Positions 4,150 through 63,645 of a stretch of 64,000 nucleotides of DNA are shown piece by piece. The stretch lies in contig NW_004797575.1 of NCBI RefSeq assembly GCF_000002075.1, positions 680,525 through 744,524 of the forward strand, read 5' to 3'. The DNA comes from Aplysia californica. Taxonomy: Eukaryota. The notes under the pieces were generated by a model. That model was not told the DNA's origin. It made no database searches and saw nothing but the letters and a program-made list of their open reading frames with translations. The translations under genes were made by a program, and so were the position numbers. The stretch's first letter is position 1. Each line of letters starts with the position of its first letter.

Positions 4150-4373
4150 CTATGTGGAGGGAACGGTTTCAATATAAGGGCAGTCAGCCGGAGCGATGCA
4201 GCGGCCGTTGTGGAAGACTTTGTCTGCCGTACACTGACAGCTGGCCACGCACGGCTTGAAGCACGTCTCTGTCACGTTGAGCTGACCGGCGGCCTGAGCC
4301 TGCTCACACGTCCTGGGGCACACCGGGCCACACTCGTCGAAGACTAGACCTTTACTGCTGTCACATTCAAAGG
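4150..4373 (-). CDS. Exon 52 (last): TIL domain and stop
   Basis: [22 protein letters not shown]...[37 protein letters not shown]; not in the ORF track. Confidence 0.92.

Positions 4374-63645: not shown

Follow-up and report, generated by a model that had tools for sequence, protein, structure and literature searches.

Gene Model

The sequence analyzed here (hereafter the window) is a 64,000-nucleotide stretch of the genome of the sea slug Aplysia californica (contig NW_004797575.1, positions 680,525 to 744,524 of the forward strand; coordinates below are those of the window), whose minus strand carries the 3' part of a very long gene for a protein that joins tyrosinase-fold, Kunitz and EGF domains and Tyr-rich repeats to a Kielin/KCP/BMPER-like array of VWC domains. 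Its G+C content is 39.6%, nine N runs interrupt it, and the stop-free stretches of its minus strand form a long series of Cys-rich coding pieces. From 63645 to 4150 these yield 52 phase-compatible exons with GT-AG borders, amounting to 9,692 nt, or 3,229 codons plus a stop at 4150-4152, and encoding, in order, a nine-cysteine (9-Cys) domain, EGF, Kunitz, GYD repeats (pentapeptides G-[YF]-[DN]-x-x), a tyrosinase fold, 31 VWC domains, a VWD domain with a GDPH motif, C8 and TIL. The initial annotation, made from the sequence alone, had proposed 52 exons in phase and ~3,210 amino acids with the same domains; the present chain agrees with it in exon number, differs slightly in length (3,229 amino acids plus stop), and recovers its domain list by Pfam, exon by exon, and tblastn.

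Exon cores were anchored by tblastn matches to nine homologues, the GT and AG sites were chosen by dynamic programming under phase compatibility, and the frames of the final chain were taken from homology clusters; Pfam, PDB and tblastn searches were made exon by exon, with in silico splicing used only for phase, stops and internal homology. In-phase splicing alone is weak evidence, since an alternative chain with exon 13 in the wrong frame, rejected after a consistency check, was still open over 3,265 amino acids. The spliced model contains 392 cysteines, 32 CxxCxC and 29 CCxxC motifs and one GDPH, and a half-domain count gives 31 complete VWC domains, each first half having its second half next to it; this pairing of halves is stronger evidence for the chain than phase.

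One Transcript across the Cassette/VWC Boundary

The bridge between the tyrosinase-bearing part and the VWC array was read as the exon 9 donor at 54075 (phase 2), the exon 10 acceptor at 52373, exon 11 at 51277-51185 and the exon 12 acceptor at 50403, with phases 2, 1, 1, identical in every site and phase to the initial annotation; the exon 10 donor is ambiguous (52279 or 52261). Four sequencing runs (X1, X5, X14 and X20) were placed on 50200-55600. In the RNA run X1, a 6,052-nt contig covers 52314-52371 and then 54073-55553, i.e., exon 10 spliced to the whole of exon 9, with ~4.5 kb extending beyond exon 9, and a 167-nt contig comprises 50337-50401 and 51183-51278, i.e., exon 12 spliced to exon 11. 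X5 and X14 are DNA, and their contigs continue through the introns. A transcript joining exon 9 to exon 10, on which the annotation had staked its single protein, is thus at hand, as is one joining exons 11 and 12. The joint between exons 10 and 11 rests on collinearity with the Argonauta and Lingula proteins, in that Argonauta residues 1856-1889 and 1884-1919 match exons 10 and 11 in order (tblastn), and on internal homology: the exon 1 tail plus exon 2 aligns with the exon 9 tail plus exons 10 and 11 with a score of 128 (shuffles 30 +/- 4.6) and with the cysteines in register, as expected if exons 10 and 11 repeat exon 2, which the annotation had also claimed. The X1 contigs flanking this joint have equal depth (22.3 and 22.9).

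It is very improbable, given these contigs, that the model fuses two neighbors, a Kunitz/tyrosinase-like gene ending after exon 11 and a KCP gene beginning at exon 12. Phase-compatible chains can arise by chance, and predicted proteins of Amia (P0182), Thunnus (P0186) and other fish do stop right after the exon-11-like domain; however, the X1 contigs join 51183|50401 (exon 11-12) and exon 10 to exon 9 (6,052 nt), the same fused order recurs in predicted orthologues from at least six phyla, and exon 12 is the first half of a VWC domain without a start of its own. We conclude that this is one gene with one transcript across the boundary.

The X1 contigs and the assembly disagree at 5 of 96 bases of exon 11 (including 51231, 51237 and 51240) but at just 2 of 1,481 in exon 9, which suggests an allele that diverges locally.

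The Gene beyond the Window

The annotation had also regarded the reading frame as incomplete at its 5' end, and further exons were indeed found in the 10.3 kb upstream of the window, collinear by tblastn with Lingula residues 276-911 and Argonauta residues 35-900. They comprise a weak LamG-like piece, VWC, EGF, Kunitz, a VWC-like piece, a first tyrosinase domain in three exons and GYD repeats. These matches imply that the whole gene extends ~10 kb further upstream and would encode roughly 4,000 amino acids or more, and the full predicted protein has two Kunitz/GYD/pseudo-tyrosinase cassettes, carried on ~1,900 N-terminal residues that are extra relative to Kielin/KCP. The part of the 6,052-nt X1 contig that lies upstream of exon 9 (~4.5 kb) may be taken to fit the length of two cassettes. 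The tyrosinase-like exon occurs at a single locus, with no second copy in the genome.

Cassette Exons

Exon 1 of the window, which is not the first of the gene (63406-63645), encodes the tail of pseudo-tyrosinase cassette 1, after its GYD repeats, and was placed by the splice chain and by tblastn with Lingula (P0001 residues 911-990) and Argonauta (P0003 residues 887-961). Exon 2 (62131-62373) is copy 1 of the 9-Cys domain, collinear with the orthologues and homologous to exons 10 + 11. Exon 3 (60651-60809; PF00008 E 5e-7, splice chain) encodes EGF and the first Kunitz cysteine, and exon 4 (59996-60203; PF00014 E 2e-16) the Kunitz/BPTI domain and the beginning of the GYD repeats, which continue through exon 5 (59118-59227; tblastn with P0001 and P0003, splice chain) and exon 6 (58434-58599; 92 tblastn high-scoring segment pairs, splice chain). 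Exon 7 (57686-57801) is a short Cys-containing linker matched by P0003 (tblastn) and by the spliced Logan/ENA proteins P0164, P0167 and P0168. Exon 8 (56369-56597) would comprise a VWC-like half domain, which weakly resembles the VWF C domain 2mhp (E 0.45), and the N-terminal helix of the tyrosinase fold, and is joined to exon 9 in the spliced relatives P0163-P0176. Exon 9 (54075-55550; PF00264 E 8e-21), covered by the X1 contig over 54073-55553, encodes pseudo-tyrosinase 2, ~30 G[YF][DN]xx repeats and a helical tail. Copy 2 of the 9-Cys domain is divided between exon 10 (52279-52373, with the alternative donor at 52261; X1 contig 52371|54073, Argonauta 1856-1889) and exon 11 (51185-51277; X1 contig 51183|50401, tblastn with P0001, P0003 and the fish proteins P0182 and P0186). 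The Pfam-matched stretches here are 60628-60819 (EGF), 59989-60225 (Kunitz) and 54074-55570 (Tyrosinase); Pfam gave no family for exons 2, 7, 8, 10, 11 and 12 or the GYD exons, and PDB sequence searches with exon 2, exon 8 and the LamG-like start returned nothing useful.

The six-Cys Kunitz fold is matched over positions 8-52 of the PF00014 model in exon 4. Its P1 residue, the one after the second cysteine, is by eye from the translation a serine and thus not the basic residue of trypsin-type inhibitors; the domain may still inhibit other proteases.

A Tyrosinase Fold without Copper Ligands

The copper-ligand columns were set by HMMER alignments to hemocyanin units and tyrosinases and by a MAFFT alignment with true tyrosinases. 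In cassette 2, none of the six copper histidines is left, the columns reading Y, A and N at CuA and A, Q and L/M at CuB, which agrees with the view of the initial annotation that the domain is a pseudo-enzyme. Cassette 1 is partly decayed and retains about three of the six ligands, namely the WHR histidine and two CuB-side histidines; the first CuB histidine is absent from it, as from all 16 bilaterian modules compared. An AlphaFold2 model of exon 9 (40 homologues) has a predicted local distance difference test (pLDDT) score of 86.6 and a predicted template modeling (pTM) score of 0.86 over all 499 residues, and superposes on tyrosinases (Foldseek E 2e-11; Z 24.3, root-mean-square deviation 2.0-2.2 Å over 224-227 residues with 1wx2_A and 9pgz_A). 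By alignment and model, then, the four-helix-bundle tyrosinase fold is kept and its copper ligands are lost.

These data bear directly on the proposal that the tyrosinase units have oxidase activity and, where growth factors are bound, tan or cross-link the surrounding matrix, a role resembling the tanning/cross-linking function that the annotation had put forward. In its favor are the intact fold of the model and the WHR and two CuB-side histidines still present in cassette 1. Against it, cassette 2 has none of the six ligands, and the first CuB histidine is missing from cassette 1 and from every bilaterian relative, so that a binuclear copper site cannot form. Judging from the ligand columns, tanning by the protein itself is unlikely, and we give working oxidases next to no credence.

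The GYD Array

The pentapeptides of the array are in register over runs of five or six units, and neither Pfam nor NCBIfam has a family that covers them. When the tyrosinase domain is left out of the prediction, the array still has a pLDDT of 84-93, and a Foldseek search against the PDB gave no match at E <= 0.001, the best VIA Z being 2.8 and on the helical tail only, although a new fold is not thereby proven. The array is thus predicted to be an ordered repeat structure without a solved counterpart, and is a candidate for an undescribed repeat fold. The same pentapeptide fills hundreds of residues in many bacterial proteins (P0204, P0205, P0222, P0095 and P0031; DUF6273-, TrbI- and helicase-linked), which weakly match the repeat region of the DotG/IcmE model; the stretch that exon 9 has in common with them covers its residues ~246-400 (54370-54835). 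A second GYD-repeat open frame of 435 amino acids lies elsewhere in the genome (G000:C1638:18444-18728), with no tyrosinase match beside it.

The VWC Array and the C-Terminal Domains

Pfam finds VWC (PF00093) in many exons between 48.7 and 11.8 kb. The exons of the array all belong to the splice chain; exons 16-19, 29, 30, 40 and 45 are supported by PF00093, tblastn cores add to the chain in exons 15, 20-24, 26-28, 31-38 and 42, and tblastn matches to P0001/P0003 in exons 39, 41 and 43.

VWC 1 is split between exon 12 (50324-50403), which is covered by the X1 RNA contig, and exon 13 (48321-48414), which was taken from copy B of a duplicate (see below) after comparison of the two copies. Exon 14 (47234-47478; PF00093 E 3e-10) holds VWC 2 and the first half of VWC 3, the second half of which is exon 15 (46048-46141). 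One exon each is occupied by VWC 4 (exon 16, 44657-44830; E 6e-12), VWC 5 (exon 17, 43513-43698; E 4e-9), VWC 6 (exon 18, 42968-43144; E 9e-7) and VWC 7 (exon 19, 41979-42167; E 4e-9). VWC 8 begins in exon 20 (41248-41328), after which the second half of one domain shares an exon with the first half of the next in exon 21 (40017-40195; VWC 8/9), exon 22 (38231-38410; VWC 9/10), exon 23 (36323-36502; VWC 10/11), exon 24 (35304-35480; VWC 11/12) and exon 25 (33690-33872; VWC 12/13; PF00093 E 9e-5, below the curated cut-off), VWC 13 being completed by exon 26 (32784-32868).

Exon 27 (32281-32509) encodes VWC 14 and the start of VWC 15; exon 28 (31424-31623) the rest of VWC 15 and the first half of VWC 16; exon 29 (30701-31034; PF00093 E 6e-8) the second half of VWC 16, VWC 17 and the first half of VWC 18; exon 30 (29345-29684; E 4e-11) the second half of VWC 18, VWC 19 and the start of VWC 20; and exon 31 (27852-28037) the rest of VWC 20 and the first half of VWC 21. 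Shared exons follow again, exon 32 (26708-26878; VWC 21/22), exon 33 (25185-25358; VWC 22/23) and exon 34 (23509-23679; VWC 23/24), before exon 35 (21940-22033) supplies the second half of VWC 24. The first half of VWC 25 lies in exon 36 (21198-21280), which has a weak donor, and the second half in exon 37 (20288-20452) together with the first half of VWC 26, which ends in exon 38 (19350-19443). VWC 27 is exon 39 (18520-18693) and VWC 28 exon 40 (17590-17784; E 3e-10); the halves of VWC 29 are exons 41 (16311-16393) and 42 (15662-15764); and VWC 30 runs from exon 43 (14915-15003) into exon 44 (13819-13965; weak PF00093 match), where VWC 31 starts, to be completed in exon 45 (11844-11997; E 5e-12).

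The array is followed by a single VWD domain across exons 46-49, comprising its start with GDPH (exon 46, 11217-11337; PF00094 E 2e-11), a second part (exon 47, 10133-10247; tblastn), a third part (exon 48, 9237-9411; weak PF00094 match and tblastn) and its end with a CGLCG motif (exon 49, 8480-8601; PF00094 E 5e-8). Exon 50 (7463-7573; tblastn with shark P0006 and amphioxus P0012) links VWD to C8 (exon 51, 5046-5226; PF08742 E 2e-23), and exon 52 (4150-4373; PF01826 E 4e-8) encodes TIL and the stop. Pfam matches cover 11425-8420 (VWD), 5011-5283 (C8) and 4153-4395 (TIL). The Kielin/KCP/BMPER-like character of the C-terminal half seen in the initial annotation is therefore upheld by Pfam for the VWC array, VWD, C8 and TIL.

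Assembly Gaps and Repeats

All nine N runs are intronic in the model. The gap at 53344-53443 is spanned by the X1 RNA contig. The gap at 31919-32167 (intron 27) is 114 bases from the exon 27 donor, that at 28417-28581 (intron 30) is 380 bases from exon 31, those at 20501-20798 and 20831-20978 (intron 36) leave 48 read bases upstream of the exon 37 acceptor, and that at 12481-12613 (intron 44) is 484 bases from the exon 45 acceptor; because the exons on both sides of each of these four introns are parts of one VWC domain, no exon has been lost in these gaps. In intron 38, 19 read bases separate the gap at 18713-18873 from the exon 39 acceptor downstream, and the gap could in principle hide a whole-domain exon, but Argonauta has just 28 residues, the size of exon 38, between its matches to exons 37 and 39.

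A tandem duplicate of two 1,175-bp copies at 47308-49659 (47308-48483 = 48483-49659) carries exon 13 and most of exon 14. Identity between the copies is 100% across 601 bp; across 337 bp that include one indel it is 99.1%. Both copies have an identical run of 239 Ns at the same offset, so that the duplicate is either an assembly artefact or a very young duplication. Exon 13 in copy A (~49590) is frameshifted by a 1-nt indel; the model takes copy B, and one copy suffices. For annotation, the window thus marks doubtful spots in the assembly, namely this duplicate and the N runs near two acceptors.

A minisatellite at 46886-47256 begins at the exon 14 donor and repeats the last codons of the exon and the donor several times in units 85-92% identical. 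Interspersed repeats lie in introns at 50200-50740, 51467-51828, 52372-52733 and 63300-63393; one of them adjoins the exon 10 acceptor, the element at 63300-63393 has at least 40 genome copies at 87-93% identity, and the summed contig depth on the repeats reaches 10^5-10^6 in every run, DNA and RNA alike. In intron 7, an open frame at 56803-57087 (minus strand) ends in CxxC...HxxxxC and by eye resembles the C-terminal tail of a non-LTR retrotransposon ORF2.

Distribution in Animals and Choanoflagellates

The exon 9 product matches full-length within long predicted "kielin/chordin-like" proteins of Lingula (XP_013412584.1, P0001; 4,190 amino acids), Argonauta (GAB1599713.1, P0003; 3,774), the shark Hemiscyllium (XP_060698749.1, P0006, "kielin/chordin-like protein isoform X2"; 3,102), Limulus (XP_022244270.1; 3,090), the amphioxus Branchiostoma (C3YUQ0; 3,055) and the crinoid Anneissia (XP_033101456.1; 3,456), at 37-45% identity by tblastn and 38-43% by phmmer; the closest named homologue is from Elysia, and a protein of the hemichordate Ptychodera (1,515 amino acids) has two cassettes. 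The model forms collinear tblastn chains with six proteins named kielin/chordin-like by NCBI or UniProt, extending over Lingula P0001 residues 911-4188 and Argonauta P0003 residues 887-3773 and including the shark, Limulus and amphioxus proteins. Pfam reports Tyrosinase, 20-32 VWC and VWD in five of the long orthologues (the crinoid protein being outside the scan), with two tyrosinase matches beside 20-30 VWC and VWD in Lingula and Argonauta and one tyrosinase match each in the shark, Limulus and amphioxus proteins. The hmmscan tables of whole orthologues listed only VWC, VWD and Tyrosinase; absence of Kunitz, EGF, C8 and TIL from the orthologues was considered on this basis and rejected, as tblastn finds these parts. 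In the shark the small domains follow in the same order, and in Limulus likewise except for Kunitz (tblastn).

The initial annotation had held that vertebrate members have no tyrosinase, Kunitz or GYD region. This does not hold for the shark, whose KCP prediction has EGF, Kunitz, GYD, tyrosinase and the Cys domain before the VWC array, VWD, C8 and TIL, nor for Amia (P0182), Thunnus (P0186) and other ray-finned fish, in which the cassette is a separate predicted protein of ~700-800 amino acids ending after the exon-11-like domain. No tetrapod is among the listed matches of the exon 9 product, which is not proof of absence. The architecture, predicted from lamp shells to sharks, is thus old and conserved and not peculiar to the sea slug.

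New here is the finding that choanoflagellates carry the cassette, mostly with all six histidines. Kunitz, GYD, an exon-8-like Cys domain, tyrosinase, GYD and an exon-2-like Cys domain occur there in the same order, no single protein being matched at every element. The cassette proteins include P0028, P0035, P0047, P0050 and P0070, most of which keep all six copper histidines; P0035, P0050 and P0070 combine all six with similarly ordered cassette elements, as do two further proteins, P0033 and P0041. The choanoflagellate set takes in Salpingoeca rosetta XP_004991800.1 ("mantle protein 9"), XP_004987702.1 and XP_004992948.1 and proteins of Hartaetosiga and S. urceolata, and Pfam reports no VWC array and no VWD in the choanoflagellate cassette proteins. 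The simplest reading of this presence and absence is that a live cassette older than animals was subsequently fused to a Kielin-type protein and had lost its activity by the time the bilaterian lineages diverged.

The searchable literature, which falls short of most subscription journals, yielded no paper on what the fused architecture does and none on the GYD repeat, in keeping with the initial annotation, to which no functional description was known. Public databases already contain predictions with this architecture (brachiopod, cephalopod, chelicerate, crinoid, hemichordate and amphioxus), and spiralian tyrosinase sequences, some longer than 3,000 amino acids and with "kielin/chordin-like" domains, are mentioned in passing (PMC11667028). 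The Aplysia gene is therefore a new sea-slug member of an architecture that is known in databases and functionally uncharacterised.

Proposed Role

We consider it likely that the window holds the 3' 60 kb (52 exons, 3,229 codons) of a single-copy gene orthologous to the long bilaterian "kielin/chordin-like proteins", and that its product is a secreted VWC-array modulator with dead-tyrosinase cassettes. The proposed gene would encode a weak LamG-like start, one VWC, two cassettes, 31 VWC, VWD with GDPH, C8 and TIL, each cassette running through EGF, Kunitz, GYD repeats, a VWC-like Cys half-domain, the tyrosinase fold, a GYD array, a helical tail and the 9-Cys domain. By analogy with Kielin, KCP and Crossveinless-2/BMPER, the protein would be secreted to the matrix, where its VWC array may bind BMP/TGF-beta-family ligands and tune their availability, and its VWD-C8-TIL end may be cut at GD|PH and anchor or multimerize it. 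The dead cassettes are unable to oxidize phenols and are most likely binding or scaffolding units derived from the older, pre-animal live cassette; they may hold the Tyr-rich GYD arrays or another ligand.

Several points weigh against this proposal. Binding, secretion and cleavage are inferred by analogy, and the model is without its first exon, which was not located, and hence without a signal peptide. The LamG-like piece scores 18.8 bits with Laminin_G_2 (E 0.0023), under the cut-off of 22.9, and a PDB sequence search gave no match for it. The exon 10-11 joint is in none of the listed X1 contigs, and the poly(A) raw-read run X20 has no reads on exons in 50200-55600, only on intronic repeats, and is uninformative on junctions. 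Finally, the skeletal matrices of molluscs, echinoderms and corals are rich in KCP-like VWC proteins, so that a structural role is equally open.

Such a role would make the product chiefly a structural matrix protein of shell, egg-case, cuticle or adhesive, in which the VWC array and VWD-C8-TIL form a disulfide-linked polymer and the Tyr-rich GYD repeats are cross-linked by other, live tyrosinases. In the Argonaut egg-case matrix no proteins are more abundant than the kielin/chordin-like VWC proteins, which have also been found in the shells of Lottia and Crassostrea (bioRxiv 10.1101/2021.07.10.451900) and in the sea-star skeletal proteome (PMC5460417), and Tyr-rich GYD arrays stand beside a tyrosinase fold that looks live in choanoflagellates. 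However, shark, amphioxus, horseshoe crab and crinoid keep the architecture yet have no such matrix in common, the Argonaut egg-case contigs are described as VWC-only (bioRxiv 10.1101/2021.07.10.451900), and structural use is compatible with ligand binding and not exclusive of it. A chiefly structural protein seems to us unlikely, though less so than either working oxidases or a fusion of neighboring genes.

Work on Kielin/KCP concerns a protein of a VWC array and a VWD by which BMP and TGF-beta signaling is tuned; the present data suggest that the ancestral bilaterian Kielin/KCP was about twice as long, with two dead-tyrosinase cassettes that were kept in sharks and many invertebrates. A pseudo-enzyme kept so long should have a function, be it to capture a ligand, to dock to the matrix or to hold its own Tyr-rich repeats. 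We tentatively suggest, as a possibility that we would stop short of calling probable, that a pre-animal Kunitz-GYD-Cys-tyrosinase-GYD-Cys cassette, apparently live in choanoflagellates, was welded to a Kielin-type BMP modulator and killed before the bilaterian radiation and has been kept for more than half a billion years, in molluscs through to sharks, for a copper-independent binding role in the modulator, with an ordered GYD array that lacks a solved counterpart and whose repeat thousands of bacterial proteins share. The intact copper sites of choanoflagellates provide a natural comparison of live and dead forms.

Comparison with Known Systems

Kielin and KCP/CRIM2 are secreted modulators of BMP/TGF-beta signaling. 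Kielin of Xenopus and KCP/CRIM2 of mouse combine, as here, a long array of VWC (chordin-type CR) domains with one VWD, the VWC count being 27 in Xenopus Kielin and 18 in mouse KCP as against 31 in the sea slug; the weak LamG-like N-terminus may match the thrombospondin-N-like start of Kielin. We know of no cassettes of the present kind in tetrapod Kielin/KCP. Crossveinless-2/BMPER has the same VWC-VWD-C8-TIL order and the GDPH at the start of VWD, with five VWC domains and no N-terminal cassettes in BMPER. The long predicted orthologues have the same domains, in the same order where present, all of them gene predictions only, and most retain the WHR histidine and, on the CuB side, one or two histidines, all of which sea-slug cassette 2 has lost.

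Type-3 copper tyrosinases and the functional units of mollusc hemocyanin have the same fold (PF00264; Z 24.3 to 1wx2_A and 9pgz_A), whereas the sea-slug domain, set among GYD arrays and Cys-rich domains, has all six histidines replaced. The choanoflagellate Kunitz-tyrosinase proteins share the cassette with the sea-slug gene and, since most of them keep the six histidines, are probably live enzymes.

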